The position numbers and the translations under genes are program-made. From Thalia democratica (taxonomy: Eukaryota), in NCBI GenBank assembly GCA_965202585.1, contig OZ241831.1, positions 13,082,001 through 13,146,000 on the forward strand: a stretch of 64,000 bases of DNA, written 5' to 3'. This document shows positions 113 to 55,052 of this stretch, piece after piece (within the stretch, counting starts at the first letter, position 1; each line of letters opens with the position of its first letter). The notes under the pieces were generated by a model that saw nothing but the letters and a program-made list of their open reading frames with translations, had not been told where the DNA came from and did not search any database.

Positions 113-3100
113 GCTTCCCATGCTGCAGTGTTTAACATCCCAGATTACGATTACTGGTGCAACCAGAACTTCTGTGTTGTGCCACATCAAAGCTACTACA
201 GCTACAAAGTCAACTTTAACCAAGCTTGGTGTCAGGGTCACTTCTACAGAGGCATCCTTTGCGAATTCCCAAAATGTTTCGTACCAAAAGGCTGTGAAGC
301 TGGTAAGCGTTTACGTGATAAAATACATTAAAACTTTCTCAGTCTTTAAAACCACATTGAAAGTTTTTAATTAATAAAGTAATATAGTTTTTTTATATAC
401 TTATATTTTTAAATTTATTCTAGTTAATAGGATATCTTGAACGTTAAAGTAAAAAAAGCCCATTATTTTGATTCAATTCTTGTCTTTCAAGCGCATTAAA
501 TGACAAAACGACATCATTAACAAATAAATAACTTAAGCTGTTTTTTTTATAACAGAGGAAAATGCCGCTGGAAGAATCAGTGAGATCGAACAGAAACTCG
601 CCCATGTCAGACAACAGATCTACGGTGAGTTGATGCAAGGACAAGAACAATGGATCAAGATGCTCATGGACTTGAACCACCAATACGTGTGCACCTTCAG
701 AGATTACTACCAACATGCTACCAACTGCGCATACTCCGAACTTGAAGGTAGATTGAAACAATACTCCGACGAGCTTGAAGGTTACAAACAACAGGGTATT
801 GCTCGCTACAACGGAAATGTTCAACAAATTATGCAAAAGATTGAGCAATACCATTGTCATCTTGTTGATCAGTAAGTAAAACTATTTTAAGCATGACTTT
901 TTACAAAAAAAAAAAAAGTTTGCCATTTTTAATATGTGATTCGCTTGCAAAGAAGCAGATTAGTTTTAAGTACAAAAACAGAATATTCATAAAAAGAGTT
1001 AAAACTTTAGTCATCACATAAGATGATATACAAATACCCAACTACTACATTTTAAGCTAGGAACTCAAAAACACAAAAAAATAATAAATTTAAAAAACAA
1101 CATGAACAATTTTAGAAAACATAAAATCAAACACGAATCAACAAAATTAGGTTAAAAGGATGTCTCCAAAAGCGTCAACACCAAATCGGTGGCATTCACG
1201 GTAAAATGGGTGAACGTGCCCAACATTATGTCCACGTTTACCATGAAAAACTCGATAAACTTCGTTCTAGAAAAATTACTTACGTCAGACACATCTTTGC
1301 TACTATCTACAGTTAGTGGATTTTATTATTATAGAAATTTCGATAAGTTTTAGCTAATTAAAGCTACATCATAAAAGACTATTAATCTAAACTAGAATAT
1401 CATACGTAGCTTTACCGACTAACATACAGCTATAAGTAGATGTATCAAAATAACAATCTATGTGTTTTACTAAGCTGCGTAAAAATTTATAGAAGGCAAA
1501 GATATGCCTTCCGAATTTGAAGATGCAATTAAGCAATGGGAAGAAGAAATGGTCAGATACGATCAGACTTTGGTCCAAGGTTTCTACACTAAAGTGATGG
1601 AAGCAGCACAAATGGTTGAAAAAGATTACAGATGTACTTATGTCTGTTACTTCAGGAACGGTTGCTACAGCATTGTAAGAAAACAATCAAAATGGTCAAT
1701 TTCATAAAATTAACATTTATTTTGCTTTTCAATACGTCATAATTACTTTTCCTTTTTAGCGGTGATCTTCCAGTTGCACCAAAATGCAAGTTTAACCTCA
1801 GTAGTGTTGGAGCTTTCTCAGCTGAATGGAACGGATGTGCTTACAAAACTCTTAAAACTTGTTCAAAGAGTAAATTTAGTTGTAATGCTTGTTTTTTGAA
1901 AACAAAAAAAGGAAAAATATATTTTCTTACCAAAATAATAAAGCTTTTATTTTTAAACGTTGTCATTAATGTTAACTCTTTAAGTATGTAAAAATGTAAA
2001 AATAACAATTTTAAAGCGAAAATGTATTTACAGAGGAACAAGAATCCGGTGGCGAGTTCCATTCTGAGAAATACGAAGAAGAAATTCACAGAAAATGCAA
2101 CGTATACACTCAAGAGCTCGCATACAAATACAGATCATGGAAGAAGCAAGTTGAAGAATGGTGTCATTTTGCTATCACTGGTCTTGAAGAACTCATTGTT
2201 TGCAAGATGCCAAAGGGATACAACGGGTATGTTTACTATTTAACTTTTTTTGATGTTTAACAAATAAAAAATTAAAACAGTCCTTTTAATGATTAAATTT
2301 TTTATTTATTTATTAAAGGTTAAGAGACGACTTTGATCAAATACTAAACAATATAAAAAGTAAATTTTTTGTTTGACATAAATATTTTAAACTTAAATAT
2401 TAAATACTTATGTTACTTAATAATTAAAGTATTTTTTTATTTTCGTTTGGTTTGGCAAATTTTTATTTAAAGGCCTAACTTTAAATACACTACAACTTAT
2501 AACTAGAAATCTAGTTTTGATATACTTTTTTAATGTTTTGTAATTTTTAAAATAAACTACAGCTTTTTTTTTCGGAAAAATATTATTAATTTCAGATGCC
2601 CACCAACCCAAGCTGAAATTGAAAACTTCCACAATTTGTTGAGAGCTCAAGCCAAGGAATGGATCGACCTCCATCAACATAAAATGCTCCACCAAATCGA
2701 GTGCGTCCACGAAAGAGTTCACGTTCGCATCTTGCAATGGAAAACTCATGCTGACCAGATGATCCACAAAGTTAAAGCCAACTTCCACCAGTGCATGTCC
2801 GGCAGACAGTCAAAGATCGACGCTTACATCAAGGGACTCTACAACAAACGCGTCCATCAACGTGCTGCCATCATCAAGACTTTGACCCACGTTAGTTTGA
2901 ATTTAATGTTGTATAAAAATCAGTTTGAAAGGTGTTTACGTACAAGCATGCAAGCCTATAAAATCAAAACATTGTTTAATGTAGAATGAAATATCAAGGA
3001 ACTCCTAATTTGTTAAAATTCTGTTTTAATTGTTAGCTTAAGCAACTAGCACCAAGACTACAGAACTATAAAGTTGTTTTTTTATTACTGGCTTTTACTA

Positions 3101-3491
3101 TAAACTTTCAACCTAAAATGTGAAATACAAACCATGTGTATTTGTAATATGTATTTGTAAACTAAAGTCAATTATCTATATTTCTTCCTTACAGCGTGCC
3201 CATTGCCACTTGGTTGCTTTTGACAAGTTCTTCTCCAGCGTTTTCGGTGAAAATCCAAACCAACTCGTACTCAACCTGAGAACTCACTACCACGAATGCG
3301 TTGACACTAAAGTGAAGAAGATTATTGAAAAGTTCGATTACTTCCACCACTACTACGAGCCAAGATTGATCATGCACTACTGCTGCTGCTTCAAATGTAA
3401 CGCCAAGTTCACCTGTCCATCGTTCAGACTCATGTGCAAATGGAACTTCTGTCCACCATCAGTTCACTCATGTACCTTCCGTACTTGTTAG
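113..3491 (+). CDS. Copy A of secreted His/Cys-rich two-repeat protein gene (5'-partial; exon 1 is upstream of the window). Exons 113-302, 556-871, 1151-1311, 1493-1694, 1760-1869, 2034-2226, 2596-2890, 3195-3491
   Basis: All junctions are GT-AG with compatible phases (0,1,2,1,2,1,2,0) and give one open frame ASHAAVFNIPDY...SCTFRTC*. Exons are GC-richer with C-ending codon bias and recur in four other copies. The exon-5 donor is weakened (GTCAAT). Confidence 0.88.
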
Positions 3492-3627
3492 GTAAATATT
3501 CTTTATATAAGATATAAAAACATTTTAAGATTTTTTTGTACTGACCTGACAAAGTTAGATTTTAAGGACATAATTTAAAAATATCTCGTCTTTTTTAATA
3601 AGAAATTTAATAAATTTTATTTTGCAG

Positions 3628-3671
3628 GTGATCACTATGAAGAACAAGATCGCTTCAACTTCAAAGAATAA
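3628..3671 (+). other. Terminal exon 10 of copy A (3' UTR exon, or short alternative coding tail DHYEEQDRFNFKE*)
   Basis: TTTTGCAG acceptor at 3627; homologous segment downstream of copies B, C and D; followed by AATAAA signals. Confidence 0.7.
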
Positions 3672-4873
3672 AACCTTTTAATTTGTGTTAATTAATAAAC
3701 GTATAAAAATGGTCATAGTTTTTTTATAAACACGCTACATTAAAACTACTTATGGCTTGAAAAGTCTTTAAATAAAGAATTGTTATATACCCAAAAAAGT
3801 AGGTATCAAAAAGATTGTAGATCTTAAATCTTGTAATAGCTTTTACTTTAAACTATTCAGTTTTAGTTAAAGTAAATAACGGTTATGGTAAGATTCGGCA
3901 GTATTTTAGAGTAAACCAGGCAGACTTAATGAAAAAAATTATCTATCAAATCGGATATTTTTAGAGTTTTAACGGGCCATTATACCTTTCAAAACATTTA
4001 CAAAAATAACTTAAATTACTAGATAAATTTGTTGTAATCAATCAAAAAGCGCAACTATTTACTCTAAATTATATTAATATAATTTTTTCTAAATCCTTTT
4101 CATAAAATTATTAAATTTTTTCGAATTTTTTCAACTAAAAAATATGTAACAGATTTCATGTTGCTTGCAAACCGTACTTGTTGAAACGAATTGCTTGATT
4201 CACAAATTTGTCAAGCGTGATATTTGCCCAAAACTGTTGTTAATTGAGTAAATAAAAACACCACTTGAATAAAACTTTGAAATACAATTTAATAAAGTTA
4301 TGAAAAAATTAAACCTTTATATTAGGCAGGTATCAGCAAAGTGCGGCCTAGGAAAAAAAAAGAGTTATATGGCCTTCGACGTGCGTTAAAGCTATCAAAC
4401 AATATCTAAGTTGTATAAAAACTATTTTAAGACTTCTTTGATAAATATTTTTAAATGATATTTAAAAATTAAATGTGAGTAAACAACAAGGTTCACAAAC
4501 TAGCATCTAAGTTTTATTTTTTTTTATTAGTAAATCATTTTTAAACACGACGGCCTATAGCCATACCTGACATAGTTGCAAAAATCTAAAACTTATACTT
4601 AACAAAAAAATTAATTACTTAAGCCTGTTTAAAGTGTTTCAACATATTTTTGGCTTGTTACTTTCAACGAAAAATACTTATCAATTACAAAACATTACAA
4701 GATTTAGTTGTCAAGTGATAATTAGCTAACTGATTACTTTTCAAAATTGGTTTTTAATAAAAAGAAATGGTTTAAATAACAAAAAAAAAGTCATTTTTTG
4801 ATGGTCAAGCTAGATTTAGCGTACATAATAGGATAAAAATAAACAATTATGACAAAAGTTAAATTGTTAAAAA

Positions 4874-4929
4874 GTTTATTACTTAACAATTGTTTCACGC
4901 TAGTGCGATGATCACAAGTAAAAGTAAAC
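4874..4929 (-). ncRNA. Type I hammerhead ribozyme motif, G3-C8 core variant (PLE1 left arm)
   Basis: Exact reverse complement of the motif at 9439-9494. Confidence 0.6.
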
Positions 4930-5464
4930 AAACTAATAAGTTGCAACGGACAAACATTTTATATAGTTTTAGATAAGTAATTAGTTGATTAGGTGATTGG
5001 TTAACTAATTAAATTTTAGTAATATTCAGCAAGATAAATTATAATAAACGTAAATACAATTATAACAAAAATCAAACAACAAAACAAAACTATATAATGA
5101 AAACAAAGGTAGATTTAACTTAAATCTAGCAAATTAAGACTTTAGATAAAATTTTGTAAAATGTCTACATTTTCCCACCAGTTCTGATCTCAAGTTTAAA
5201 AGTTTTTTTTTATCTGCAAATGCGATTTCAAGTCTTTCCAAGTTACATAGGGTGCAAATTTTACTGGGCTTATTTTGGTTACTGCGATGAATAATTTCCC
5301 ATTTTATCATTTTTCTCCAATCAGGGTTGCATTTTTTTATTTTGTGAATGAATCTACTTAATCTTGTACTTTCTTTCTTCTTTACATTATTAAAGGATTG
5401 TATATGTTCGTAAAATCTACTTTTAAATTGTCTCCCAGTTGAACCAATGTAAATATATTCTTTA

Positions 5465-5993
5465 TGAATACAATAAGATTTCATATTCTTGCATGTCCAA
5501 TTTGGAAAAAGTATTGTCCAATCACAACCAGAAATTACTTCAAAACTCAAATGATACAACTGAAGAAAACCGCAAATTATGCAATTGTAGATCAAAAAAT
5601 AATTGTCCAGTTAAAGGTGAATGTCTTACTAAAGGAGTCATTTAAAAAGCAACAGTCATGTATAACAAAAAAGAACATATTTACATTGGTTCAACTGGGA
5701 GACAATTTAAAAGTAGATTTTACGAACATATACAATCCTTTAATAATGTAAAGAAGAAAGAAAGTACAAGATTAAGTAGATTCATTCACAAAATAAAAAA
5801 ATGCAACCCTGATTGGAGAAAAATGATAAAATGGGAAATTATTCATCGCAGTAACCAAAATAAGCCCAGTAAAATTTGCACCCTATGTAACTTGGAAAGA
5901 CTCGAAATCTAATTTGCAGATAAAAACAAACTTTTAAACTTGAGATCAGAACTGGTGGGAAAATGTAGACATTGTACAAAATTTTATTTAAAG
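5465..5993 (+). pseudogene. Penelope-like GIY-YIG endonuclease remnant (plus arm); second copy on minus strand at 5134-5463
   Basis: Translation SYSCMSNLEKVLSNHNQKLL...CNCRSKNNCPVKGECLTKGVI*KATV..YIGSTGRQFKSRFYEH with in-frame stops; matches ORF-track pieces 5439-5645, 5658-5912 and 5134-5595(-). Confidence 0.85.
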
Positions 5994-7785
5994 CAGGGTT
6001 TCCCAAACTCATTTACTAAATCGCCCCCTTTTCAGAAATTTGAAAAATAATCGCCCCCCACGATTTCAAAAAGTAGTTTTTCTCTTGAGTACAAACTTTT
6101 GAGCCAAAAAATTGTGTTCAAAATGTAATTTAGTCTGGTATTTCTTATACACGCACTTATGGGCTGTGTTCAAAGTAGTTTACAGGGCTTGAGAAAATAA
6201 GTTATGTTGTTTTCTTATAAGCCCAGTAGAGTGTATTAAAATACTTAAATACTAAAAAGCCTTGTGTAATCAGTAATCAATCCTGTTTATTTATGAATTG
6301 TTTTGAAACTAATGAAAATTTTAGGGTAGTGGTGGACAACTTTTGTAGTCAGCAATTCATATTTACTAAAAAATATTTTCTTGTTTCAACTCGTTAAAAA
6401 AAATATATATGCGGGCTGCATAATTTAAAAAAATAACGTATAGAAAACTAAAAAACTTGAGCATAATTGTAATAAAATGATTTACTATTATTGTAATCTA
6501 GGAAATACTAATGTAGCTGAAAACCAAATTGAAAGTGTATTTCAAAATCATAAGCATCAAAAAACTAATCTTCGTTTATTTTGCAAAGTATTTTCAAGTT
6601 ACTTGGCGGGTCGAAATTTGATTGGATCTGGACCGTAAGTTACCCATCTGAAATCTTAACTGAAACCTGACATTATAACTATCTCTCATTTAACGAATTT
6701 CGGACATTTAGAGTGAATATTAAGTAACTTATTTAAGCCGCACAAAATACTTAAATTATTTTATAAATAGGCATATTCTAAAATTAAATACCAGAGATTA
6801 AAAAACTATAAAAGATTAAACAAATTTTTTAAACATAATGAAATAGATATTAAAACATTATTGCTGATCCAGTTTTAGGAAGTTTGACTGACAGGTTGAT
6901 TATCTCACATAAAAAGTTGTTTTATCAATAGCTTCTGTTAATGCAGTAAAATTATTAATTTCAATGCTGAGATATATTATTAGCAAGTTAGTTGTATAAT
7001 TAAAAATTCAATTCTAAACTTTTTAAACTTTATGTTTTGTAGTAGAATACCATTAAATAGTATTTGACTTAAAATAACCTTTAGGAAACTAAACCTTAAT
7101 TTTAACATTTTTTTTCTTCATTTAAATTCAAAAAAAATAAAATGTTTTACAGTTAATTCTGTGAACAGAAAGTAATCAATTAAAAAATTCTTTTTATTGT
7201 GTTAAAACTTTCTTTTGTAACTGTAGAAGTCTTTTTGATTACTTATTTAATACTGTTTAATTTTATTTTTTCTCTAGTTATTAGCCTATAATAATTTACC
7301 AGAAGAAAATAGTGAAAAACTAAAAGCTAGTGTTGAACTATTGAAATAAACAACATATTCTAATTGCTAATATATTAAAAAATAAAATAAAACACAAAAC
7401 ATTTGTATAATTAGTTTAAAATTATTTAATTTTATTTGATAGATTTTTTAACAGTAATAAATAAAGTTAGAAAATAAATTTAAGTTTAATAATCTTTTAA
7501 ATGAAAAATTTGAAGTCATTTCAAATAGAGACATCAAATCTATACTCTTTTAAATCCAAAAATAATTTTTGAAATAAAAACTTAAATGGTTATCAAGGTT
7601 TTTTTATTTATACAGATTAAACAAGTAATAACAAAAATATGTCAAGTAAATTTCTTTCAAACAAATACTTTAACCACTATGCTATAAAAACTTTTAGTGT
7701 AATGTAAATCGACAAATATAAACTACAAAATAAACCCGGTCAAAACAAAGCTATTAACATATTTAAAACATAAATTTTATAAATG

Positions 7786-8028
7786 CAGTAGACTTCCTGT
7801 TCAATTCGCACTTTGAACAAAATAAAAAAGTTTTAACTCAAAAATTATTACCATTTTTTTACAAAATGATAAATTTAAATATTTTATATGCAATAACGTT
7901 ATGAATAAACATGAAATCAACTAAAACATAAAACAAACATTCAAAAAAAAAAAAAAAGATTTATATAAGCTATTAAATATTGTGTACTTTTTTGGGTAAA
8001 AAGTGCGAACTCAAGAGGAAGTCTACCG
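7786..8028. mobile_element. MITE with pogo/Tigger-like TIRs nested in the hAT element
   Basis: ~29-bp imperfect TIRs CAGTAGACTTCCTGTTCAATTCGCACTTT / CGGTAGACTTCCTCTTGAGTTCGCACTTT; TA on the right flank (left flank reads TG). Confidence 0.65.
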
Positions 8029-8161
8029 TAATTAACATTTCTTAGGCATTATGCAAACCTGTTAAAGAATAAACAACTTAAAAGAATTTTTTATATAAAA
8101 AGAATACATAATACAATACAAAGACTTAAAACAATACTAACCAGGTTAAACAAGAAGTATT

Positions 8162-8580
8162 TTAAAAAATCAAAAAAATAAAAAAAACTTTCATAAAATA
8201 ATTTCTGCTACTGAATTCTAATATAATGCGAAGGATGAGGTTCATGAATGCTTGCAAGTGTTTATAATCTGATTCTAAATCAGTCAAATAAAGCCTCAAG
8301 TCACCTCCTTTACAAATATTTAGATTAGATATTTTTCTCAAGATGTTGATAACTAAACTGAAAGCTTTCTCAACAACATAGCTAGAAGGAAAAACTATAC
8401 ACAACAATCTAATTTCCTCTCAATGATTGGATACTTTTGCCTTAGTTTTTGTTGAGTCCAAAAGCTTTCATTTCGTTCTTTGGAAACATTTACTTTGAGT
8501 TAAAGGTCAGTTTGTAAGTCCGAGAAGGTTTCCTGTGAGTCGTTTACTTCAAAAAGATCTGCCACGAAGGGATCCATATT
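8162..8580 (-). pseudogene. Decayed hAT (Buster/ZBED-like) transposase C-terminal remnant
   Basis: Minus-strand translation ...ESFWTQQKLRQKYP... then VFPSSYVVEKAFSLV...GGDLRLYLTDLE, typical of the hAT dimerisation region; contains stops and a frameshift. Confidence 0.8.
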
Positions 8581-9438
8581 TTTATCTATATGATAGCTTT
8601 TTTTTGTCAAATCGAAATTTTACTTAATATGTTGAAATTGTTAAAAATTCCAGATTAAAAATTTTTTTTTTGCCTAAATTATCAAATTCCAGGTTTTTCT
8701 AAGTAAATTGGCAACCCTGTATAGTTTTATTTCTTAGTCTAACTAAATGACTTTTTAAAAAACAATTGGAAACATCATGAGGTGATAGTTAATATAGATA
8801 AGATACATTTTTACAAACTATTTATGATCCTAAATAACATATATGTAAGGTAAAAAAATAGTGAAAAGAATTCCGATCGTCTATGATCTATGTAAGTGTT
8901 CAATAAGGAAATATACAATTGAAAATATGTAATTAACTTGAAAGTAGGAGTCATAAATACTTGATTTTTTTCTCTATATTTTACATAAACACAATAAACT
9001 TTTTTGTTTAAGTTTTACCACAGGGTCAAATATTTAACAGCAAGCTAAAATTAGTAAAATAAAAAGTAAAAATTCTATGACAACCCAAAATTTTAAAATC
9101 GCCCCCTTTTCGCCCCCTTACTAGTTATCGCCCACCCTTTCGCCCCCTTACTAATTATCGCCCCCCGAAATACTAAAATCGCCCCCAGGGGGGCGATATC
9201 GCCCACTTTGGGAAACCCTGATTTAAAGTCTTAATTTGCTAGATTTAAGTTAAATCTACCTTTGTTTTCATTATATAGTTTTGTTTTGTTGTTTGATTTT
9301 TGTTATAATTGTATTTACGTTTATTATAATTTATCTTGCTGAATATTACTGAAATTCAATTAGTTAACCAATCACCTAATCAACTAATTACTTATCTAAA
9401 ACTATATAAAATGTTTGTCCGTTGCAACTTATTAGTTT

Positions 9439-9494
9439 GTTTACTTTTACTTGTGATCATCGCACTAGCGTGAAACAATTGTTAAGTAATAAAC
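9439..9494 (+). ncRNA. Type I hammerhead ribozyme motif, G3-C8 core variant (PLE1 right arm)
   Basis: Stem I TTACTT/AAGTAA (plus GTTTA/TAAAC beyond a 3-nt bulge); core GUGAUCA; stem II U-CGC-ACUA-GCG-U; GAAA; palindromic helix III CAAUUG; predicted cleavage after GUU at 9483. Confidence 0.62.
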
Positions 9495-10519
9495 TTTTTA
9501 ACAATTTAACTTTTGTCATAATTGTTAAAGGCTCCTTAATTGTGAAGCTCTTTAAAAATCTATTGTTAAAACAACTTCAATAAAAACAAACAAACCTTTA
9601 TTTTTCAAACATTTTTTTGGGAAAGAAATTTTGTACACTATTTTTTATAACTTTCATTACTACAGTTAAAATTTCATATACAACGTACAGAAGGCGTGAA
9701 AACTTCTTTAAGAAATTCCGGCCCACGAAAGACTTCATATGGTGAATCTGGCTCGCCGACTAAAATTAATATCCACCACTAACTAATCGCAATATAACTA
9801 AGAATTGTTTTATAAAACACTTATAAGCTAGCTAACTTTATTTTTAAAATTTTTTAATTACTTATTTTTTTACCTTGAAAACACATCATTTTATCTAGTG
9901 TACCTTATTTCAACTTTTAATTGCTGCCAATGTTGCTTTAAAGTCTTTTTTTGAAATTCTAGAAAGAAACTACCGGTTTTTTTTTTGTTCGTATAAAATA
10001 TTGTACTCTGTTTTTTTAAGAAGAGCTAGAATAAACTTTAATTGAGATTGTACCCTTTCAAACATGCTCAAGTATTTTTTTACTGACAATTTAGACAGCG
10101 TTTATAGAGTTTTCACTGTAAAAGTTAATTCTGAAATCTATATAGTCCGAGGTATGTAAATGTTCCAATTTAAACTTAAACTGTTCTGCAACGCTCATTT
10201 TTAATTAAAATAGGGATCGGCAAACTGCGGCTCGCGGGCAATAAACATATTTTTACCCATAACCAGCTATCATATTCTTTTAATAGCATTTTGGTTAATT
10301 TGATGTTAATTTCCACCATATTGGAAAAGCCAAAAACCCACAAAGCATTTGCAGTACTTGCATACTAGAAAAGGTCGCGATCGTTAAAGCCGACAAAAGG
10401 GTTAACTTAAATAAACGGTACGAGCTCTTTTATTCCTGCCCGCACTTCAGAAAAATTCACTTTAAAACTTAAGTCTTAAGTTGTCCGTAATAAAGGTTTT
10501 ATGCATACTCTTAAAAAGT

Positions 10520-12099: not shown

Positions 12100-15000
12100 A
12101 CGTCACATTGACCGTTGTCGGTGGTCATGCGGTGCTGTATTGTGATTTTTGAGTAGTGGTGTGAAAACAACTCAGCATTGCTGTATTCAACCGGATTAAC
12201 TACTACCTTATAAACTTTATAGAAGATTGATAACAAGCTAGATAAATACAAGAAATGTCACAATCAACTAAACGCATTTTATAGACAAATATTAACTTAA
12301 CAAACTTGAAAAAACTTTTAACATTCTATGAAATAAAGTAGAGACTGTTTGACTTGTAGAATACAAATTTATTTAGTACTTACCAAACTTTATAATCCTA
12401 GAGACTGCTTTTAAATCACTATAAAAAATATTATTTGACAAATAAAAAGTCTGGTAACAAAATGAAATATACGATAAGTATTTTCACGGTTAGTGTAATA
12501 ATTTGATTTTAACATAAATTAAGTAGTTAACTATGGTTTCAGTTTTATTTTTATAGAAGTTGTTGTTCAGTAAGTTTAATACTTAAAAAGAAAAACTTTA
12601 AAAACTGAACAGAAGGCTAAAAAACCAAAAAGTAATTTGCTACTTCAGATTTAATGACAGTAATTATCACAGTTATTACTTATCAATTTAGTAACAAACA
12701 AAAATGTTTGATTAAATTTAAAAAATATTTTGGCAATTTAAAGAACGGGATTAAAGGTAAAAATTAACTTATTTAGAAAAAAAAAATTACAGTTTCTATA
12801 TAGTTTTATCACGTAAAGTAAAAAATGTTACTACCAATTAAAAAAAAATCTGTAGAGATTATCGATAAATAACAAGTTATATCAATGTGTAGCGAAAACT
12901 GTACTTACTTAAAAAAGGGTACAGTTAAGAAATAGACTATTTCACAGGTGCGTTTTTAGGACTATATGTATGAAACAAAATATTGTTAATTAATTTAGAA
13001 TAAAGGTAAAACTTTAGTATTTTTGATTAAGATTGGATGTAAACTCAAAGTTGTAGTTTAAGGTAAAATTGTATATTATCTGAAGCAAAGTATTGCTTAA
13101 ATTTTATTAGAATGATGATAACACTTTTAATAAACATACCTTGCAAGAAGGTATACCCTTTTTCTACAAACTTTAACACATTTTGACCAACTATAAAAAT
13201 GTTATAATATTTTAAACTTTTGTTAAGGACTTATTCAAACTATAGCAAAATTTATTCTTTACAAAATATTTAGTTAATACTAAAACAGCTATCGGAAAAT
13301 TTTGTTTGCGAAAGAAAGCTTTGAAAGTTATATAGTATTTTAGTCCAATATAAAGAGTGAAAAACCACAAATGCAACCCCGAATATTTTCATTTTTTAAA
13401 ATTGGCTCGCGACCACTAAATGCTTGCCGACCCCTAGTATAATGTAAAAAACATTAAAAAATCACTGTCACGGTACTTTTCGAAAAAACTGAAAAAAAAA
13501 CTTCGCAACAACAAAGTTTAATAAAATACTTTTAAAAATCTTAAAAAACTTAAGTCTAATTTTGTGCTTTGATGATAAGAAAAAGACTTGTTTGGTTTTT
13601 GTTGAGCTGGAGAACGTTTTCAAAATGTTTAAAAGTATTTTTATTCTTTGAAAAATAGGTACTGTTAATTTTTGTACGTTTTCAAATGAATACAACTTTA
13701 GATAGATTTAGGCTGTATTACTTTATATTTTGTTAACTGTTACTAAATTAACTTTTTTTAAATCATGTCTGAACCTATGATATCGAAATAGTAGTATGTA
13801 CTACTATTTTCGAGTTTAACAACCTGTAGATTTAATAAACTATATATTTGAATAAAATAAGTGAAATTTTAGTTGTGTTTTTCAAACAATTTTTTTTTTG
13901 TTTTATGATTACGTTTTAATAAATACAACGTATTTTTTCGGTCACAGTCATTGAAACAAACTCAGAGATCACTTAAGAAAAAATTTCACGATTTAGAAAT
14001 TGAAGAAAGATTTTGTATTACTTTTAGTTTAAACAAAAAAATAAAAGATCGTTTAAATGAACTAAAGCGCCTTACGTTAACATAAATCTTTCAAAAAGCT
14101 ATTACAACACTTTCTTTTGTTCTTGAATAAGCAGATTAAAAATGTTTTAATAAACGAAAGATCTCTTTCTAAGTGTTATGTTTAAAAAACTGAGAAAGTT
14201 TTATACAATGGTTTTTAATGAAACTTTGTTATTCAAGCTACTACAAGTTGTCAGATTCTTCTCTAAAAAAAGATGTAGAAAAAAATAAATTCTATTTAGA
14301 ACTAATACAAAGCAAAGGTTATCAGGGTTCGGCAGCCTTTTAAATCTAACAGATTAAAGAACATTATATCTTTGCCATTTTGCAAACTTTTAGCTTGATT
14401 TCAATTGTTATTTGAATTCGTTTTCTTTTCTTTGCTGTCGTATCCATTTTTAAATAAGGTAAAGTTAACAGTTTCAAAAGTATCTATCTTGCTTGCTAAA
14501 TCATAAAAGCTTCCAAATAAACATAAGAAACATTTTTTATTTACTGAGCCCGAAAACAAATAATGAACTATAACACTAAGTTTGAAAGAAATATTAGAAT
14601 GATGACGCGTAAATTGCTTGTTTAGTTATATAAATTATATTATGCATGTTTTTATAGTGAAACATTGATTTTCGCTGAATTGAATAAATCTACTTCCCAA
14701 CTAAAGCCGGCCGAATAATAGAAGCACAGTACTATAAAAATCAAAAATATGATAAAATAAGCAATAAAAATGAACTAGTAAAAGTTAATTGTTTATTTAA
14801 GAGTCTTATTATAAGTTTTTACCACAATTCGTTGAATCTATTGTTTTAAACAAGTAAATTTTTGGCTGGAAAGTACCTCACGGCCGCAGTTGCCGATCTC
14901 TTCGCTACATAGTTTCTGGCAAATGGTAACTAATGAAAGGGCGTTGTAGAACAGTTTAGTTTTTAAATTGATTACAAAATCTCGTACTATATAATTTTCG

Positions 15001-15839
15001 GAGTTATGCTTTTACAACTTAGGTCAGGTGGGTTCAATGTGTTCTTATTCGCATTAGTTAATTAAAAGTTTGAACAAGTATTTACAATTATACTAGAATT
15101 CAAAATAAATTATTTTCGTATTAAATTGTTAGTATTGTATAGATTTTCTAGTAGGTTTGTATCGTTTTTATTCTATTCTAAATAGATGTAAAATAATATA
15201 GCTCGATTGTTAAAATAAAAACTTTTTTAATGCAACAGTTTTTCTAATTGGTTAAAACGTCTTGAAATAATCGTTTTTTTTGTCATAACACTTAAAAAGC
15301 CAATTAAGTTTTTCCTTTTTTTTTGTTTTTTAAGTTGATTATATATTTCCTTAACAATTAAACTAATTAATTCTATTACCTTAGGTTAGTCCTAATAAAA
15401 AATAGTTTTTTGATTTATAAAATCGTAGCTAGTAAAACTTTTTGAGTTTATTATTGTTTTAGTTGTTGAAATAAGTTCTAAGTTGAACGGTAATTTATAA
15501 AAAAAGTTGTAAAATAAGACGATATTATTAAATTATTAAAACACTAGGTTTTGTAATTGTGTTTCTAAATGGCTTCCGACCTCTGCATTTTCGCTATTAA
15601 TCGATTTTGTACGTTTAGTATATACTATTTTTAACATTTACTAAAACTAAATGAAACAGATCTGAAGTCAGTTTAAAACTTAGCTAAAATAAGTATATTG
15701 CGTTGCTTAATTACCTCCCAAGCTTTACTAAAAAACTTAACTAAATCTTAATGCTTGAGTAGTTTTAACGTTAAGTCCTATATAAAACATACAATGATAA
15801 CTTTTGAGCAGTTTAATAATAAAAAAAGTTAAAAAGTTT

Positions 15840-15883
15840 TTATTCTTTGAAGTTGAAGCAATCTTGTTCTTCATAGTGACCAT
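15840..15883 (-). other. Terminal exon 10 of copy B
   Basis: TTTTGCAG acceptor; homologous to 3628-3671. Confidence 0.7.
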
Positions 15884-16020
15884 CTGCAAAATAAAGTTTA
15901 TCAAATTTCTTATTAAAAAAGACGAGATATTTTTAAATTAGGTACTTGATATCTAACTTTGTTAGGTCGGTATGAAAAAAACCTTAAAATGTATTTATAT
16001 CTTATATAAAGAATACTTAC

Positions 16021-19857: not shown

Positions 19858-19923
19858 AGTTTTGGTTGTCTGTATTATAATAATCAAACAAGCAATAGAT
19901 GTCAAATGTCAGTTCGTCTGTAC

Positions 19924-25472: not shown

Positions 25473-25479
25473 TATAAAA
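25473..25479 (+). promoter_or_regulatory. TATA box of copy C
   Basis: TATAAAA at the same distance from the ATG (25546) as in B, D and E. Confidence 0.72.
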
Positions 25480-42650: not shown

Positions 42651-42694
42651 TTATTCTTTGAAGTTGAAGCGATCTTGTTCTTCATAGTGACCAT
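42651..42694 (-). other. Terminal exon 10 of copy D
   Basis: Nearly identical to the copy B terminal exon. Confidence 0.7.
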
Positions 42695-42833
42695 CTGCAA
42701 AATAAAGTTTATCAAATTCCTTATTTAAAAAGACGAGATACTTTTTAAATAAGGTACTTGATATCTAACTTTGTTAGGTCGGTATGAAAAAAACCTTAAA
42801 ACGTTTTTATATCTTAGTATAAAGAATGTTTAC

Positions 42834-45800
42834 CTAACAAGTACGGAAGGTACATGAGTGAACTGATGGTGGACAGAAGTTCCATTTGCACATGAGTCTG
42901 AACGATGGACAGGTGAACTTGGCGTTACATTTGAAGCAGCAGCAGTAGTGCATGATCAATCTTGGCTCGTAGTAGTGGTGGAAGTAATCGAACTTTTCAA
43001 TAATCTTCTTCACTTTAGTGTCAACGCATTCGTGGTAGTGAGTTCTCAGGTTGAGAACAAGTTGGTTTGGGTTTTCACCGAAAACGCTGGAGAAGAACTT
43101 GTCAAAAGCAACCAAGTGGCAATGGGCACGCTTTAGATTTTGAATGTATATTTAGTTTGTGTTTACCAAGTATGATAGTCTATAAACTTCATTATATATT
43201 AAAAATATATTTTTTGTAAGTTTTTTAATGAGAAAATTTTATTAATCATTTTAAAGTTCTAGGAGTCTATTCGTGCACTATTTTTTGAACAAAATAGTCG
43301 ATACTATAAACTACATAAAAAAAAAAATACTGCCTATAAAATAACTTTTTTTAAATCTGAAAAATGTCGTTATCAATAAAAAAATAAATAGAGATATTTG
43401 AAAGCTATTGTAAATTCAAACTAACGTGGGTCAAAGTCTTGATGATGGCAGCACGTTGATGGACACGTTTGTTGTAGAGTCCCTTGATGTAAGCGTCGAT
43501 CTTTGACTGTCTGCCGGACATGCACTGGTGGAAGTTGGCTTTCACTTTGTGGATCATCTGGTCAGCATGAGTTTTCCATTGCAAGATGCGAACGTGAACT
43601 CTTTCGTGGACGCACTCGATTTGGTGGAGCATTTTATGTTGATGGAGGTCGATCCATTCCTTGGCTTGAGCCCTCAACAAATTGTGGAAGTTTTCAATTT
43701 CAGCTTGAGTCGGTGGGCATCTGAAATTGATAAATTTTTTCTATGCAACTAGTATACTATGATCCATTACTATAATCATAATATTAGAGACGGGACTGTT
43801 AAGTAGCTTTTAAACTCATAATTTTAAGCTTTTTTCGTTTAGTGTTTCATACAAAATTAGTTAGACAAAACAAAACTTGCTATTTTACCTAACTTCTATT
43901 CTAACACATAAAATCATGATTTAAAGTTCATATTTTTTTATAAAAACAGAGTAATTATATTTTTACTTTACTTTTGTGTTGGATCAAACTTGTTTCATAA
44001 CCGTTCTCTAACAAAACTTTTCTATATTTAGTTGTTCGATAGATCTTCTTTTATAAACTTTAGTTTCTTAAACACAAAAAAAAAGTTATAAACATACCCG
44101 TTGTATCCCTTTGGCATCTTGCAAACAATAAGTTCTTCAAGACCAGTGATAGCAAAATGGCACCATTCTTCAACTTGCTTCTTCCATGATCTGTATTTGT
44201 ATGCGAGCTCTTGAGTGTATACGTTGCATTTTCTGTGAATTTCTTCTTCGTATTTCTCAGAATGGAACTCGCCACCGGATTCTTGTTCCTCTGTAATTAC
44301 ATTTTCGCTTTAAAATTGTTATTTTTACATTTTTACATATTTAAAGAGTTAACATTAATGATAAAGTTTAAAAATAAAAACTTTATTAAATTAGTAAAAA
44401 AAATATTTTTTCCTTTTTTTCTTTTAAAAAACAAGCACTACAATTTAACTTACTCTTCGAACAAGTTTTAAGAGTTTTGTATGCACATCCGTTCCATTCA
44501 GCTGAGAAAGCTCCAACACTACTGAGGTTAAACTTGCATTTTGGTGCAACTGGAAGATCACCGCTAAAAAGAAAAAGTATTTATGACGTTTTGAAAAGTA
44601 AAATAAATACTTATTTTATTAAACTGATCTTACCATTTTGATTGTTTTCTTACAATGCTGTAGCAACCGTTTCTGAAGTAACAGACATAAGTACATCTGT
44701 AATCTTTTTCAACCATTTGTGCTGCTTGCATCACTTTAGTGTAGAAACCTTGGACCAAAGTCTGATCGTATCTGACCATTTCTTCTTCCCATTGCTTAAT
44801 TGCATCTTCAAATTCGGAAGGCATATCTTTGCCTTCTATAAATTTTTACACAGCTTAGTAAAACACATAGATTTTTTTTTGATACACCTACTTAAAGCTG
44901 TTTGTTAGTCGGAAAAGCTACGTATAATATTCTAGTTTAGACTAATAGTTTTTCATGTTGTAGATTTAATTAGCTAAAACTTATACAAAATATTATATAA
45001 ATATAAAATTCACTAACTGTAGATAGTAGCAAAGATGTGTCTGACGTAAGTAATTTTTCTAGAACGAAGTTTATCAAGTTTTTCATGGTAAACGTTGACG
45101 TAATGATGGGCACGTTCACCCATTTTACCATGAATGCCACCGATTTGGTGTTGACGCTTTTGAAGACATCCTTTTAACCTAATTTAGTTGATTCGTGTTT
45201 GATTTTATGTTTTCTACAATTGTTCATGTTGTTTTTTAAATTTTTTTTTGTGTTTTCGAGTGCTTAGCTTAAAATGTAGTAGTTTGATATTTGTATATCA
45301 TCTTATGTGATGACTAAAGTTTTAACTTTAACTTTTTCAATGAATTTTCTGTTTCTATACTTAAAATTAATCTGCTTCTTTGCAAGCAAATCACATACTA
45401 AAAATAAACGTTTTTTTCAAAAAAATTATGCTTTATATTATTTTACTTACTGGTCAACAAGATGACAATGGTATTGCTCAATCTTTTGCATAATTTGATG
45501 AACATTTCCGTTGTAGCGAGCAATACCCTGTTGTTTGTAACCTTCAAGCTCGTCGGAGTATTGTTTCAATCTACCTTCAAGTTCGGAGTATGCGCAGTTG
45601 GTAGCATGTTGGTAGTAATCTCTGAAGGTGCACACGTATTGGTGGTTCAAGTCCATGAGCATCTTGATCCATTGTTCTTGTCCTTGCATCAACTCACCGT
45701 AGATCTGTTGTCTGACATGGGCGAGTCTCTGTTCGATCTCACTGATTCTTCCGGCGGCGTTTTCCTCTGTTACAAAAAAAAAACTTGAGTTATTTATTTG

Positions 45801-46589
45801 CTTATATTATTATTATTTTTACTTTCAGTTTTAATTTTTTTAAATAAAGATAAAGATGAGTTTTATGTGATTGAAAATTAAAAATAAAGTTAAGGTAAAT
45901 GGTTGACAATTTTTACTTAAGTATGTAATATATCTATATGTTTTTTTTTCCAGTTTTTAAACGGAAATTTATACGAAAATATTAAATTTCATTAATTCAT
46001 AAATTTTAGTGAACTTTTTTAAGTAGTTAAGATAATTTTGTTTTAGTTTTACTAAACACTTACCGGCTTCACAGCCTTTTGGTACGAAACATTTTGGGAA
46101 TTCACAAAGTATGCCTCTATAGAAGTGACCCTGACACCAAGCTTGGTTGAAGTTGACTTTGTAGCTGTAGTAGCTTTGATGTGGCACAACACAGAAGTTC
46201 TGATTGCACCAGTAATCGTAATCTGGGATGTTAAATACTGCAGCTTGGGAAGCCTGAAAAGTGTAGAATAAATATTAATGCTGTTTATTTTACATTAATG
46301 TTTCGGCAAGAATAAATAAAACTTAGATTCTTGGTTAATTGAGCTTATTAGACACATCATTAAGTAAAAATTAGTGATAGAATCTTTTATGAATGGAATA
46401 CATCTTTAATCACGTTTAAATTTTGAACTAGCAATAAATTTTATATTTTTCTGTGTTATGTTAAATGTTAGCTTTACAAATTATTTGTACCCATCATAAG
46501 TTATTATGCTTTTAAAATTCTGAAAAACAGTATATGATAAATTTTAAACTTACTACAATGCATGCTAAGAAGACAGCGACTATCTTCAT
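42834..46589 (-). CDS. Copy D, complete, ~599 aa. Exons 46589-46554, 46253-46064, 45766-45451, 45178-45018, 44835-44634, 44563-44454, 44290-44098, 43720-43426, 43130-42834
   Basis: Same exon lengths and phases as the other copies; open frame. The exon-9 acceptor is an atypical A-rich ...AATCTAAAG, shared with copy C. Confidence 0.86.
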
Positions 46590-46655
46590 ACTTTTGATTG
46601 TCTGTATTATTATAATCAAACAAGCAATAGATGTCAAATATCGGGTCCTCTGTAC

Positions 46656-46780
46656 TTTTATACTTCATTGTAAAAACAAAACTTTATTAAACAAACAAAT
46701 TTGTACAATTACACTTTCAATAAAATAAACAACACTTAGTGTAAAGTGTTTGAGTAGTACTCGAAAATACTTGAAAATGA
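46656..46780 (-). promoter_or_regulatory. Copy D core promoter (TATAAAA 46662-46656 and conserved upstream block)
   Basis: Same spacing and block as copy B. Confidence 0.72.
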
Positions 46781-50999: not shown

Positions 51000-51117
51000 A
51001 CAAGTATTTTCGAGTACTACTCAAACACTCAGCACTAAGTATTGTTTTTTATTGAAAGTTATTTTAAAATGAACTTGTTTATTTATTAAAATTTTATTTG
51101 TATAGTACAGTATAAAA
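51000..51117 (+). promoter_or_regulatory. Copy E core promoter (TATAAAA 51111-51117 and conserved upstream block)
   Basis: Same spacing to the ATG (51184); block TTTTCGAGTACTACTCAAACACTCAGCACTAAG. Confidence 0.72.
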
Positions 51118-51183
51118 GTTCAGAGGAACTGACATTTGACATCTATTGCTTGTTTGATTATTATAATACAGACAATCAAAAGT

Positions 51184-54100
51184 ATGAAGATAGTCGCTGT
51201 CTTCTTAGCATGCATTGTTGTAAGTTTAAAACTTACCATATAAAGTTTTGCTGCCTTGTAAAGGCATAACAATTTAGTACTAGTAAAACCAATTCTTAAT
51301 GCTATCATTTAATTTAAGATTAATAAAACTTAAATTTCATCTAAACTAAAACTTAGAATTACTTAAAGTTGTATTCTTCTAGTCAAATTTTTTTTAGTAT
51401 CACCACTTTTTATTTAGCAAAAAGTATAGTTGCTTCAATAAACTAAATATGTAAGCTTTATCTATAACAGATTCTGCTGCCTTATAATCATTGTCTAACA
51501 AGATATTTTTTATCTATTTTCATCTTTTCAGGCATCCCATGCTGCAGTATTTAACATCCCAGATTACGATTACTGGTGCAATCAGAACTTCTGTGTTGTG
51601 CCACATCAAAGCTACTACAGCTACAAAGTCAACTTCAACCAAGCTTGGTGTCAGGGTCACTTCTACAGAGGCATCCTTTGCGAATTCCCAAAATGTTTCG
51701 TACCAAAAGGCTGTGAAGCTGGTTAGAATTTACAAAAATTTCTGTTGAAAAGCTAAAATTCTGTTTAAATGCTAAAAAATCACATAGATAAATCACATGC
51801 ATAAGTGAAAAGTGTCAACTTTTTTGTTTGTTTTTTTAATTTTTTAATGCACTACTTATAACCAAATTTAACATTAATAACAACACTAGCAAGTGAACAA
51901 CCTGAAGACTTTTTTCACACAGAGGAAAACGCTGCTGGAAGAATCAGTGAGATCGAACAGAGACTCGCCCATGTCAGACAACAGATCTACGGTGAGTTGA
52001 TGCAAGGACAAGAACAATGGATCAAGATGCTCATGGACTTGAACCACCAATACGTGTGCACCTTCAGAGATTACTACCAACATGCTACCAACTGCGCATA
52101 CTCCGAACTTGAAGGTAGATTGAAACAATACTCCGACGAGCTTGAAGGTTACAAACAACAGGGTATTGCTCGCTACAACGGAAATGTTCATCAAATTATG
52201 CAAAAGATTGAGCAATACCATTGTCATCTTGTTGATCAGTTAGTAAAATAATATTTAGGATTCTAAGCTTAACTTCCCCAAAAAAAAGGTTTGCCATTTT
52301 TAATATGTGATTCGCTTGCAAAAGTATAAAAACAGAATATTTATTTGGAAAGTGAACGTTAAAATTTTAGTGATCACATAAAAACGATATACAAATATAA
52401 AACTACTACATCTTAAGCTAGGCACTCTAGAAACAAATAATAAGATTTAAAAAAACAATATGAACAATTGTTGAAAACATAAAATCAAACACGAATAAAC
52501 AAAATCAGGTTAAAAAGTTGTCTTCAAAAGCGTCAACACCAAATTGGTGGCATTCACGGTAAAATGGGTGAACGTGCCCAACATTATGTCAACGTTTACC
52601 ATGAAAAACTCGACAAACTTCGTACAAGAAAAGTTACTTACGTCAGACACATTTTTGCTACTATCTACAGTTAGTGGATTTAATTGTTATACAAAAAAAT
52701 AAAAAACTTAAGCAAATTTGAATTTACTTCTTGAAACTCTTGTTCATCATTTAAACATTAAATTTATAGTAAAAATATTTAATTTTATATAAAAGTATGT
52801 ACAAGAGTTTCATCAAAATGGAAATTAATTTTTATAGTTTTAATTAAACTAAAATAATAAGTCATTAAAGAAAAATAATTTAACTATAACTATTAGTATG
52901 TATATGGATTGTTTTAAAAGTGACTTTAATTGATTAGCTAATCGTGTAAATATTTTTAGAAGGCAAAGATATGCCTACTGAATTTGAAGATGCAGTTAAG
53001 CAATGGGAAGAAGAAATGGTCAGATACGATCAGACTTTGGTCCAAGGTTTCTACACTAAAGTGATGCAAGCAGCACAAGTGGTTGAAAAAGATTACAGAT
53101 GTACTTATGTGTGTTACTTCAGAAACGGTTGCTACAGCATTGTAAGAAAACAATCAAAATGGTAAGATCATTTTAAAAAAATTAGTATTTATTTTGCTTT
53201 TCAATACGTCATAATTACTTTTTCTTTTTAGCGGTGATCTTCCAGTTGCACCAAAATGCAAGTTTAACCTCAGTAGTGTTGGAGCTTTCTCAGCTGAATG
53301 GAACGGATGTGCTTACAAATCTCTTAAAACTTGTTCAAAGAGTTAGTTACATCGTATTGCTTATTCTTAGAAAATAAGTTCTAAATGAATTATCACCGTT
53401 ATATATTCTCTAGCTAAAATAAACCTTTTATTTAAAGATTATCATAAAGTTTATTTATAAACGGTAGAAAAGTTATATAACAATTATTAAAAACTTGAAT
53501 GTTTTTGCAGAGGAACAAGAATCCGGTGGCGAGTTCCATTCTGAGAAATACGAAGAAGAAATTCACAGAAAATGCAACGTATACACTCAAGAGCTCGCAT
53601 ACAAATACAGATCATGGAAGAAGCAAGTTGAAGAATGGTGTCATTTTGCTATCACTGGTCTTGAAGAACTTATTGTTTGCAAGATGCCAAAGGGATACAA
53701 CGGGTATGTTTATTGTTTAACTTTATTAGATATTTGATAAGTTAAAACATACCTATTAATAATAAAAATATGTTCTTTAACTAAATGTTTTGCGACGACT
53801 TTGATCAAATACTAAATATAATGATAGGTAAATTTACATTTGAACATAAAAATATTCAAATTAAAATTTACAAACTTTTGTTACCTAGTAAGTAAAGTAT
53901 TTTTATTTAGTTTGTTTTGTTTGGAAAACTTTATTTAAAGGTCTAACTTTGAGTGTACACTTACTTATAAATAGGAATTTAGAAGCTCCTTTGGAACTTT
54001 TTATTTTATTTTTTTTGTAATAGAAAAAAAGGGAATATTAATTTGTTTTAGAGATCTAAAAGATATGTTACTAATTTCAGATGCCCACCGACTCAAGCTG

Positions 54101-55052
54101 AAATTGAAAACTTCCACAATTTGTTGAGAGCTCAAGCCAAGGAATGGATCGACCTCCATCAACATAAAATGCTCCACCAAATCGAGTGCGTCCACGAAAG
54201 AGTTCACGTTCGCATCTTGCAATGGAAAACTCATGCTGACCAGATGATCCACAAAGTGAAAGCCAACTTCCACCAGTGCATGTCCGGCAGACAGTCAAAG
54301 ATCGACGCTTACATCAAGGGACTCTACAACAAACGCATCCATCAACGTGCTTCCATCATCAAGACTTTGACCCACGTTAGTTTGAGTTTATGAGTTTGAA
54401 GCTTACATAAATTGCTACTTTTTTTTTTGTTTTAATTACAACGATTTTTGAATTATATCACTTTGAAATCAGTTCCTGGTATTTCCTAGGTTGTTAAAAA
54501 AATATTTACAGTATTAATTTAAGTATACTCCATGAACTGTATAGAAATTAATGCAATTTTTAAAGTACTAGACTTGTAAAGCGTAAAATAGAAAAATCCT
54601 TAAATGTAAGTTTGAAGAGTCGGTATAAAATACCAGACTCTTTAAACCTGAATAAAATATACATTAAACTTTTACAAACTTCCAACCTAAAATGTGAAAT
54701 ACAAACCATATGTATTTGTAAACTAAAGTCAATTATCTATATTTCTTCTTTACAGCGTGCCCATTGCCACTTGGTCGCATTTGACAAGTTCTTCTCCAGC
54801 GTTTTCGGTGAAAACCCAAACCAACTCGTACTCAACCTGAGAACTCATTACCACGAATGCGTTGACACTAAAGTGAAGAAAATTATTGAAAAGTTCGATT
54901 ACTTCCACCACTACTACGAGCCAAGATTGATCATGCACTACTGCTGCTGCTTCAAATGTAACGCCAAGTTCACCTGTCCATCGTTCAGACTCATGTGCAA
55001 ATGGAACTTCTGTCCACCATCAGTTCATTCATGTACCTTCCGTACTTGTTAG
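51184..55052 (+). CDS. Copy E, complete, ~599 aa. Exons 51184-51219, 51532-51721, 51923-52238, 52509-52669, 52960-53161, 53232-53341, 53511-53703, 54081-54375, 54756-55052
   Basis: Same exon lengths and phases; open frame; GT-AG junctions (exon-6 donor GTAGTT is weak). No homolog of exon 10 downstream. Confidence 0.88.

Follow-up and report, generated by a model that had tools for sequence, protein, structure and literature searches.

A five-copy, alternately inverted gene cluster of Thalia democratica that encodes a predicted secreted protein of an unnamed marine plankton family

Background

Salps and related animals strain seawater in large volumes through a mucous filter, and to our knowledge the protein composition of this filter, like that of the tunic in full, is still unsettled. 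The Ends proteins of ascidians (CiEnds1-3 and HrEnds1-2) are tunicate-restricted secreted proteins without recognised domains, as the protein described here appears to be. We found a single study in which the mucous filter of an ascidian was analysed by proteomics (bioRxiv 10.1101/2025.01.21.634085); it reported no mucus-specific proteins. Here we analyse a 64-kb stretch of the Thalia democratica genome (contig OZ241831.1), referred to below as the window, which harbours a cluster of genes for a histidine- and cysteine-rich protein.

Results

Repeat finding, a five-way MAFFT alignment, and splicing and translation across the 64-kb window bore out the alternately inverted array claimed by a first-pass annotation: five gene copies in the order +,-,+,-,+ are arranged head-to-head and tail-to-tail, three of them intact (c2, c4 and c5), one cut by the window edge (c1) and one dead (c3). 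Copy c2 (16021-19857, minus strand) comprises exons at 19857-19822, 19366-19177, 18923-18608, 18323-18163, 17982-17781, 17711-17602, 17447-17255, 16903-16609 and 16317-16021, and its first stop is TAG. Copy c4 (42834-46589, minus strand) has its exons at 46589-46554, 46253-46064, 45766-45451, 45178-45018, 44835-44634, 44563-44454, 44290-44098, 43720-43426 and 43130-42834, and those of copy c5 (51184-55052, plus strand) are located at 51184-51219, 51532-51721, 51923-52238, 52509-52669, 52960-53161, 53232-53341, 53511-53703, 54081-54375 and 54756-55052. Every intron of these three copies has GT/AG ends, and each spliced coding sequence measures 1800 nt, which corresponds to 599 aa and the TAG stop. 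Copy c1 (113-3491, plus strand) is truncated by the left edge of the window, outside which its promoter and exon 1 fall; its exons 2-9 (113-302, 556-871, 1151-1311, 1493-1694, 1760-1869, 2034-2226, 2596-2890 and 3195-3491, including TAG) show an uninterrupted reading frame. The earlier description of five copies with nine coding exons stands with the exception of c3, which lacks exon 7. A sixth copy, suggested by a match to the TATA motif at 62568, was ruled out by the absence of DNA or protein similarity at 55.4-64 kb.

Copy c3 (25546-29072, plus strand) has retained exons 1-6 and 8-9 and is a non-functional pseudogene. In its exon 4 (27060-27220), an in-frame TAA takes the position occupied by CAA or CAT in the other copies. 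Instead of the 193-nt exon 7 it has an unrelated insert (27855-28047, plus strand) with no homology to the other copies in the alignment, so that the reading frame is shifted. Within this insert, a putative HH9-type hammerhead is located at 27871-27941 (plus strand; Rfam HH9, 38.8 bits, E 1.6e-8), a match below the Rfam gathering score of 52; at gathering thresholds, the Rfam search reported no RNA genes in the window.

All four copies whose ATG lies in the window carry the TATA motif AGTATAAAAGT 73 nt before the ATG (25471-25481 for c3 and 51109-51119 for c5 on the plus strand, 19922-19932 for c2 and 46654-46664 for c4 on the minus strand), inside a conserved core promoter of ~95 nt, as had been proposed for each complete copy. 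Conserved sequence in c1-c4 indicates that the stop codon is probably followed by a non-coding tenth exon. In c1 this putative 3' UTR exon, which contains AATAAA signals, spans 3628-3700 on the plus strand, and its equivalents begin at 15883 (c2, minus strand), 29202 (c3, plus strand) and 42694 (c4, minus strand); the preceding intron has its donor (GTAAAT or GTAAGT) directly after the TAG stop and a conserved acceptor, TTGCAG. An alignable equivalent is absent from c5. The strong bias towards C-ending codons noted previously is evident in Tyr (36:2), Asn (22:3) and Phe (23:6); His, Asp and Cys do not share it, and overall the coding sequence has a GC3 of 0.47 and an ENC of 39 in a window of ~27% GC.

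The near-identity of the exons was likewise corroborated, with 95-100% identity between copies. Intron identity is 66-70%, the exception being c1 and c2 at 86%; these two are inverted partners which share 90.7% identity across 3.75 kb, introns included. In addition, the c2 region (13507-19947) and the c4 region (40294-46682) form a direct repeat with 92-94% identity. Between copies, dN/dS ranges from 0.05 to 0.17, and dS is 0.07-0.10 compared with an intron mismatch of 30-34%.

The computed composition of the 599-aa precursor agrees exactly with the earlier hand count of 36 His (6.0%) and 35 Cys (5.8%), and the number of Tyr (38) is also high. In the spliced translations the N-terminus reads MKIVAVFLACIVAS, followed by HA, QG or QA, and the signal-peptide-like sequence noted there earlier is conserved family-wide (MKF[VI]A[VI]FLACIVAAQA, also given as MK[FI]VAVFLACIVA...). 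Its removal would leave a mature protein of ~69 kDa with a pI of ~8.8 and 34 Cys. Secretion of the product is supported by the conservation of this signal peptide across the family, by the even number of Cys in the mature protein and by the conservation of Cys-rich caps.

The protein had been called unassignable to any family. This holds with respect to named domains and known structures, as Pfam searches with all eight exon translations found nothing near threshold and there was no PDB match either, but the protein does belong to a large unnamed family. More than 50 unnamed proteins of ~600 aa from marine metatranscriptomes and Tara metagenomes align end to end with 33-46% identity and E ~1e-150. 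Family members and single exons served as proxies in the remote searches and models, and the spliced 599-aa protein was used in local comparisons, where blastp with the c5 protein covered residues 1-596 of 599, with E ~1e-150 for P0053 and 46% identity for P0088. With exon 9 as query, exhaustive HMMER searching yielded 30 matches, and profile searches yielded 34 and 51 clusters, none of them named; among the HMMER and profile search matches there was no named or NCBI/UniRef-sourced protein and no detectable similarity to named oikosins, the house proteins of larvaceans. So far the family is known from marine plankton sequence data alone; nested inside it, the window copies and P0088 form a clade with 100/100 support.

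The relatives (such as P0088, P0053 and P0011, from JGI/IMG, Tara Oceans and Logan data) are collinear with the window protein over the full length and share its signal peptide, the Cys pattern of three caps, two-unit architecture, intron positions and the cap motifs YRCxYxC and HYxCGxKC, and Cys in the window protein fill ~18 columns in which Cys is conserved at >=70%. The Tara contigs with a family gene have ~27% GC and introns at positions matching the window gene: those of the P0015 gene (contigs L006-L008) interrupt the protein at about aa 76, 234, 304, 346, 396 and 496, and the matching introns of the window gene at aa 75, 234, 302, 338, 403 and 501. The window protein differs in its His content, which at 6.0% is the family maximum (0.5-4.7% in the relatives), in its low Ala content, in extra Cys within the helices and in a long branch common only to P0088; moreover, some relatives carry an N-terminal Gly/Lys/Met/Ser low-complexity extension, which the window protein lacks. 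A large, abundant and wholly unannotated secreted family is thereby defined, together with a confident structural model and a gene structure.

The AF2 models reached a pLDDT of 88.9 at full length and of 94.4 for the C-terminal half (pTM 0.71). They predict two tandem units, each built of helices of ~45, ~100 and ~42 aa and closed by a small Cys-rich cap, with a further Cys-rich module at the N-terminus of the mature protein. The relative placement of the two halves is uncertain because the full-length model has a pTM of only 0.51. The halves are homologous (hhalign probability 96%, E 3e-9), and by this profile comparison the mature protein is an internal tandem duplication. Foldseek against the PDB with the full and half models, as well as VIA-align wide, retrieved generic helical hairpins and BAR-like shapes only, with E >= 0.14 and a Z of at most 9.2 that does not reach the noise level given for helical folds, and the ESM Atlas, queried by features and by shape, contained no credible relative. 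BAR, F-BAR and IMD domains lead the low-probability Foldseek lists and resemble one predicted unit in its short-long-short antiparallel helices. They are, however, cytosolic membrane-binding dimers, and with E >= 0.14 and TM <= 0.3 the resemblance does not go beyond shape.

Discussion

The first-pass annotation had proposed an abundant, dosage-amplified and secreted product. Secretion and the features of a high-output gene find support in our analysis, while the metal-binding option that had been offered with them does not. The impression of a gene geared to high output is supported by its TATA promoter, the biased codons, the presence of several copies that are kept alike, the dN/dS of 0.05-0.17 and the occurrence of relatives as full-length transcripts. 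These relatives are found as full-length mRNA-like contigs of ~1.9-2.7 kb in many marine metatranscriptomes, and the contig of one of them is labelled with ~2570x coverage (cov 2571). For the five copies themselves no transcript or peptide was found in our searches; the nearest sequences are fragments with 83-85% identity, presumably from another species, and the same-species transcript search with exon 8 retrieved one fragment only, with 85% identity.

We consider the chances even that the window contains a cluster of a lineage-restricted tunicate gene for a structural or matrix protein that a secretory epithelium releases in bulk to the extracellular space. Such a protein would be made in very large amounts, an output to which the TATA promoter, the codon choice and the number of genes would all contribute. 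The leading candidate for the source tissue would be the glandular endostyle, which produces the feeding mucus, with the tunic epidermis second. Stiff helical units may act as building blocks that are joined or stabilised via the Cys-rich caps; polymerisation through these caps is pure inference. If the family is a component of the filter or the tunic, it would offer a molecular handle on filter construction and would also serve as a marker by which ocean metatranscriptomes can be screened for pelagic tunicates.

The cluster itself may have arisen by duplication of a unit of ~26 kb carrying one inverted gene pair. It would be young, with homogenisation of the copies still ongoing, and the gene would be restricted to the tunicate lineage. 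The locus could serve as a genomic example of dosage amplification combined with concerted evolution, and even if the product is merely another lineage-specific secreted protein, it provides a clean case of paralogues whose synonymous sites have stayed 4-5 times more constant than their introns.

A more specific possibility, which we find plausible but on balance rather unlikely, is that the gene encodes the salp member of the endostyle-specific Ends proteins (CiEnds/HrEnds), which glandular zones of the ascidian endostyle secrete into the feeding mucus. When the full-length model was compared with the AlphaFold DB, the 650-aa protein O44236 was the sole outstanding match (E 1.7e-11, probability 1.00, TM 0.51/0.48; next match E 0.04), collinear from 1-594 of the query to 1-644 of the match, and the C-terminal half of the model aligned to the C-terminal half of O44236 (386-644). 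Over their whole length the two predicted structures share one overall architecture (TM ~0.5); their sequence identity, however, is only 20%, and O44236 was missed by the sequence searches. The format of this accession is that of late-1990s UniProt, and the CiEnds1-3 records have the consecutive accessions AB010895-AB010897 (PMC7347631). Peptides translated from published CiEnds3 primers scored at about the 95th-97th percentile of random primers when compared with the family profile, yet at 22.2 the CiEnds3 score lies between the 95% and 99% null values of 21.2 and 25.1 and is not significant, and CiEnds1 scored 18.6. None of the proteins recovered in the sequence searches was a named one from Ciona, Halocynthia or Oikopleura.

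A still more specific proposal, which we regard as improbable, would make O44236 the ascidian counterpart of this family and the family itself the scaffold protein of the feeding filter of the tunicate endostyle. Two-unit helical blocks would then be linked into filter material by their Cys-rich caps, and in the salp studied here His-rich surfaces would switch assembly on at seawater pH.

Returning to the bulk extracellular protein that we favour, its long helices also invite comparison with the exchangeable apolipoproteins A-I, A-IV and E, which are likewise secreted and dominated by long amphipathic helices. A soluble blood or body-fluid carrier of this kind would open its helices to bind lipid or hydrophobic cargo, and the family profile indeed matches ApoA-IV, ApoA-I and ApoE chains in the PDB, weakly and in both halves (E 0.005-0.04), while PF01442 is faintly recorded for many family members. 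However, exon 3 scores 12.3 bits for PF01442 against a Pfam cut-off of 90, and neither Foldseek nor VIA-align gave a specific apolipoprotein match. The predicted helices of ~100 residues are uninterrupted and are not Pro-punctuated 22-mers; the window protein has no Pro-punctuated 11/22-mer repeats, its helix topology is different, and its disulfide-rich caps are foreign to apolipoproteins. As the Pfam score is far below threshold and the architecture differs, we reject this reading, whose likelihood we consider low.

Least likely is a metal-binding or metal-storage protein based on His and Cys, as suggested earlier: the protein does contain 6.0% His and 5.8% Cys, and its His concentrate in two regions (about residues 165-230 and 415-560), but only 3 of the 36 His occupy columns conserved in the family. 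With 3 pairs observed versus 4.0 expected (P 0.78), His that could share a helix face (spaced by 3 or 4 residues) show no enrichment either. Both results leave metal binding unsupported, and the conserved Cys sit in caps typical of disulfide knots. In the family alignment, the His-richness is specific to the lineage of the window protein. It may have arisen on helix surfaces in the salp lineage and, speculatively, might tune charge between the acidic secretory granule and seawater instead of forming defined metal sites.

A five-copy array of a nine-exon gene

The window is very AT-rich (20-34% GC in 2-kb bins), and repeat finding within it revealed a unit of about 3.5 kb in three direct and two inverted copies (c1 to c5), spaced at about 25.9 and 26.8 kb from start to start. 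With all five regions turned to one orientation and aligned, short blocks of 95-100% identity alternated with stretches of 45-70% identity, as expected for exons and introns. Splice sites mapped on this alignment define nine coding exons, all introns being GT..AG (phases 0, 1, 2, 1, 2, 1, 2, 0), and the spliced coding sequence of 1800 nt encodes 599 amino acids followed by a TAG stop codon. The 193-nt exon 7 is found in c1, c2, c4 and c5 and is absent in c3; an eight-exon model lacking it loses the frame, which is kept by the nine-exon model. Neighbouring copies are arranged tail to tail (c1/c2, c3/c4) or head to head (c2/c3, c4/c5), and no further array copy was found between 55.4 and 64 kb. 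Repeat finding, alignment and splicing thus bear out the five nine-exon copies on alternating strands described in the first-pass annotation, but as genes the copies are not equivalent: c2 (19857-16021, minus strand), c4 (46589-42834, minus) and c5 (51184-55052, plus) are intact, c3 (25546-29072, plus) is a pseudogene, and c1 (113-3491, plus) is cut by the window edge, leaving exons 2-9 with an open reading frame throughout. Judging from the size of intron 1 in the other copies, c1 must have its exon 1 300-450 nt beyond the left edge of the window.

In c3, exon 4 contains an in-frame TAA where the other copies have CAA or CAT, and an insert of about 190 nt (27855-28047) takes the place of exon 7 and its flanks and shifts the frame. 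This insert carries an HH9-type hammerhead (27871-27941; 38.8 bits, E 1.6e-8) on the plus strand, the sense strand of the array gene, which is absent from a default Rfam scan because it scores below the gathering score of 52.

The motif AGTATAAAAGT is located 73 nt before the ATG in all four copies whose ATG lies in the window, within a conserved core promoter of about 95 nt. At the other end of the gene, a consensus splice donor directly follows the TAG stop, and in c1 (3489-3700, plus), c2 (16023-15810, minus), c3 (29070-29280, plus) and c4 (42836-42620, minus) this donor is accompanied by a conserved acceptor about 130 nt further on and a short AATAAA-bearing segment. Donor and acceptor indicate an intron right behind the stop codon in these four copies, and the AATAAA-bearing segment is probably a non-coding tenth exon. 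The 3' flank of c5 is unlike that of c1-c4.

Evolution of the array copies

Among the four open copies (c1, c2, c4, c5), dS is 0.07-0.10 and dN/dS 0.05-0.17; the array genes are under purifying selection and kept alike. Aligned intron columns differ by 30-34% between copies (14% for c1/c2), and synonymous sites are therefore more constant than introns by a factor of about 4-5. Along the genes, similarity forms a mosaic: c1 and c3 are 96% identical across the first 880 nt, c3 and c5 97% around exon 8, and c2 and c4 92-94% over 6.4 kb. Together with the constancy of synonymous sites, this points to exon-centred gene conversion, codon selection, or both.

The array genes show biased codon use (ENC 39, GC3 0.47; CCA 13/15, AGA 20/29). 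The preference for C-ending codons noted previously holds for Tyr (TAC 36:2), AAC (22:3) and TTC (23:6), but not for His, whose codons are even at 18:18. Promoter and codon use are compatible with high output.

A hitherto unannotated protein family

No exon of the array gene matched Pfam. An exhaustive HMMER search with exon 9 of 1.84 billion cluster representatives returned 30 proteins, several of about 600 amino acids, and profile searches widened the family to 34 and then 51 clusters (90% identity). All matches came from JGI/IMG marine metatranscriptomes, Tara Oceans assemblies, ENA or Logan; none was a named protein or an NCBI or UniRef entry. Contrary to the initial impression that the protein belongs to no recognisable family, its unnamed relatives of about 600 amino acids align with residues 1 to 596-599 of the spliced c5 protein at 33-38% identity (E ~1e-150); identity reaches 46% for one of them, P0088, and 83-85% for short fragments. 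In a tree built by maximum likelihood, the three full window copies cluster tightly and join P0088 (100/100) within the family, so the five copies are younger than the split from the P0088 lineage. A family gene on Tara metagenome contigs (~27% GC) matches the window gene in intron positions. Relatives also occur on contigs that resemble mRNAs, about 1.9-2.7 kb long and with a short 5' leader, one with a coverage of about 2570x according to its contig name. The window protein is shown to be a member of a diverse family transcribed in marine plankton. The locus is of an ordinary kind, a tandemly amplified secreted-protein gene; the family itself is hitherto unannotated, and its interest hinges on which material its proteins make.

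Family members share an almost invariant signal peptide of 16 residues, the mature protein being only 30-45% identical, which suggests that selection acts on the efficiency of secretion or on the 5' end of the mRNA. Conservation extends to about 18 Cys columns. A well-supported subclade (P0019, P0048, P0012, P0066, P0068; loci L003-L005) carries, behind the signal peptide and ahead of the first Cys-rich module, a Gly/Lys/Met/Ser-rich low-complexity insertion of 60-260 residues with MGGKS-type units, reminiscent of disordered domains in adhesive or fibre proteins.

Predicted fold

An AlphaFold2 model of the family member P0053, computed with a family alignment including the window exons, reached a mean pLDDT of 88.9 and a pTM of 0.51 (94.4 and 0.71 for the C-terminal half alone). 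Right behind the signal peptide, about 60 residues make up a Cys-rich module; two like units come next, each consisting of a helix of about 45 residues, one single helix spanning 99-111 residues and a third one of about 42, closed by a Cys-rich non-helical cap. Profiles of the two halves matched each other in hhalign (96% probability, E 3e-9, 114 columns), with the YRCNYKC motif opposite the HYxCGxKC motif, which indicates an internal duplication. As modelled, the product is shown to be a secreted, disulfide-stabilised, elongated helical protein.

Foldseek against the PDB and VIA-align wide yielded only generic hairpins and BAR-like shapes, and the ESM Atlas returned no relative; the predicted architecture is without a solved counterpart. 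In the AlphaFold DB clusters one match stood out, the 650-residue O44236 (E 1.7e-11, TM 0.51/0.48), which is collinear with the query model across both whole proteins; the runner-up had an E of 0.04. The model of the C-terminal half was likewise matched to the C-terminal half of O44236, though weakly when used alone (E 0.039).

Possible role of the protein

The conserved signal peptide, the promoter, the codon use and the similarity of the copies fit the earlier proposal of a secreted product amplified for abundance. We infer that the protein is an extracellular material produced in bulk by a secretory epithelium, with the endostyle as first and the tunic epidermis as second candidate source; the filter secreted by the endostyle is a major salp secretory product of unsettled composition. 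For an ascidian filter, a preprint reports no mucus-specific proteins (bioRxiv 10.1101/2025.01.21.634085). The tunicate endostyle-specific Ends proteins had been named as a candidate, and CiEnds1-3 correspond to AB010895-AB010897 (PMC7347631). The accession O44236 has the format of late-1990s UniProt, which is a lead on Ends and not a test. When published CiEnds qPCR primers were translated and the peptides, at their expected spacing, were compared with the family profile, the scores were 22.2 for CiEnds3 and 18.6 for CiEnds1, next to 12.9-16.9 for controls and 95% and 99% null levels of 21.2 and 25.1.

As a rival to bulk extracellular material, a soluble apolipoprotein-like carrier is less likely; profile E-values for it are only 0.005-0.04, and its architecture differs. 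The 599-residue protein contains 38 Tyr, 36 His and 35 Cys (one in the signal peptide, 34 in the mature protein), the latter two matching the earlier hand count. His content (6.0%) is the family maximum, other members having 0.5-4.7%; conservation is confined to 3 of the 36 His columns, and the others stand on helices where relatives have Ala, Arg, Lys, Gln, Glu or Asp. Pairs of His spaced 3 or 4 residues apart show no enrichment (3 observed, 4.0 expected), all of which marks His-richness as recent in this lineage and not a family function. The sequence bears no sign of designed metal sites; the metal-binding role suggested previously does not fit these results and is the weakest explanation.

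Spacers and other features

The array spacers hold transposon debris. Compared with the c3-c4 spacer, the c1-c2 spacer is split by a Penelope-like insertion (4842-9526) with 306-nt inverted ends (4842-5147 and 9221-9526, 99% complementary), an inner 324-nt inverted pair and a minus-strand ORF (5134-5595) with a GIY-YIG domain of the kind that Penelope-like elements carry (Pfam E 6e-5). A 108-residue ORF in the c3-c4 spacer (32041-32367, minus) is, by its hAT C-terminal dimerisation domain (PF05699, E 3e-8), a transposase remnant. Two 52-nt tandem repeat arrays of about 10 copies each (34739-35298 and 37111-37675), inverted to each other, look like sub-terminal repeats of a DNA transposon; they are GC-richer than their surroundings and flank 1.8 kb of unique sequence. 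Finally, an uninterrupted 300-residue ORF (61651-62553, minus) without Pfam match and unrelated to the array gene is Gln/Asn/Ser-rich, has an HHHHH run and is unusually long given DNA of about 27% GC.
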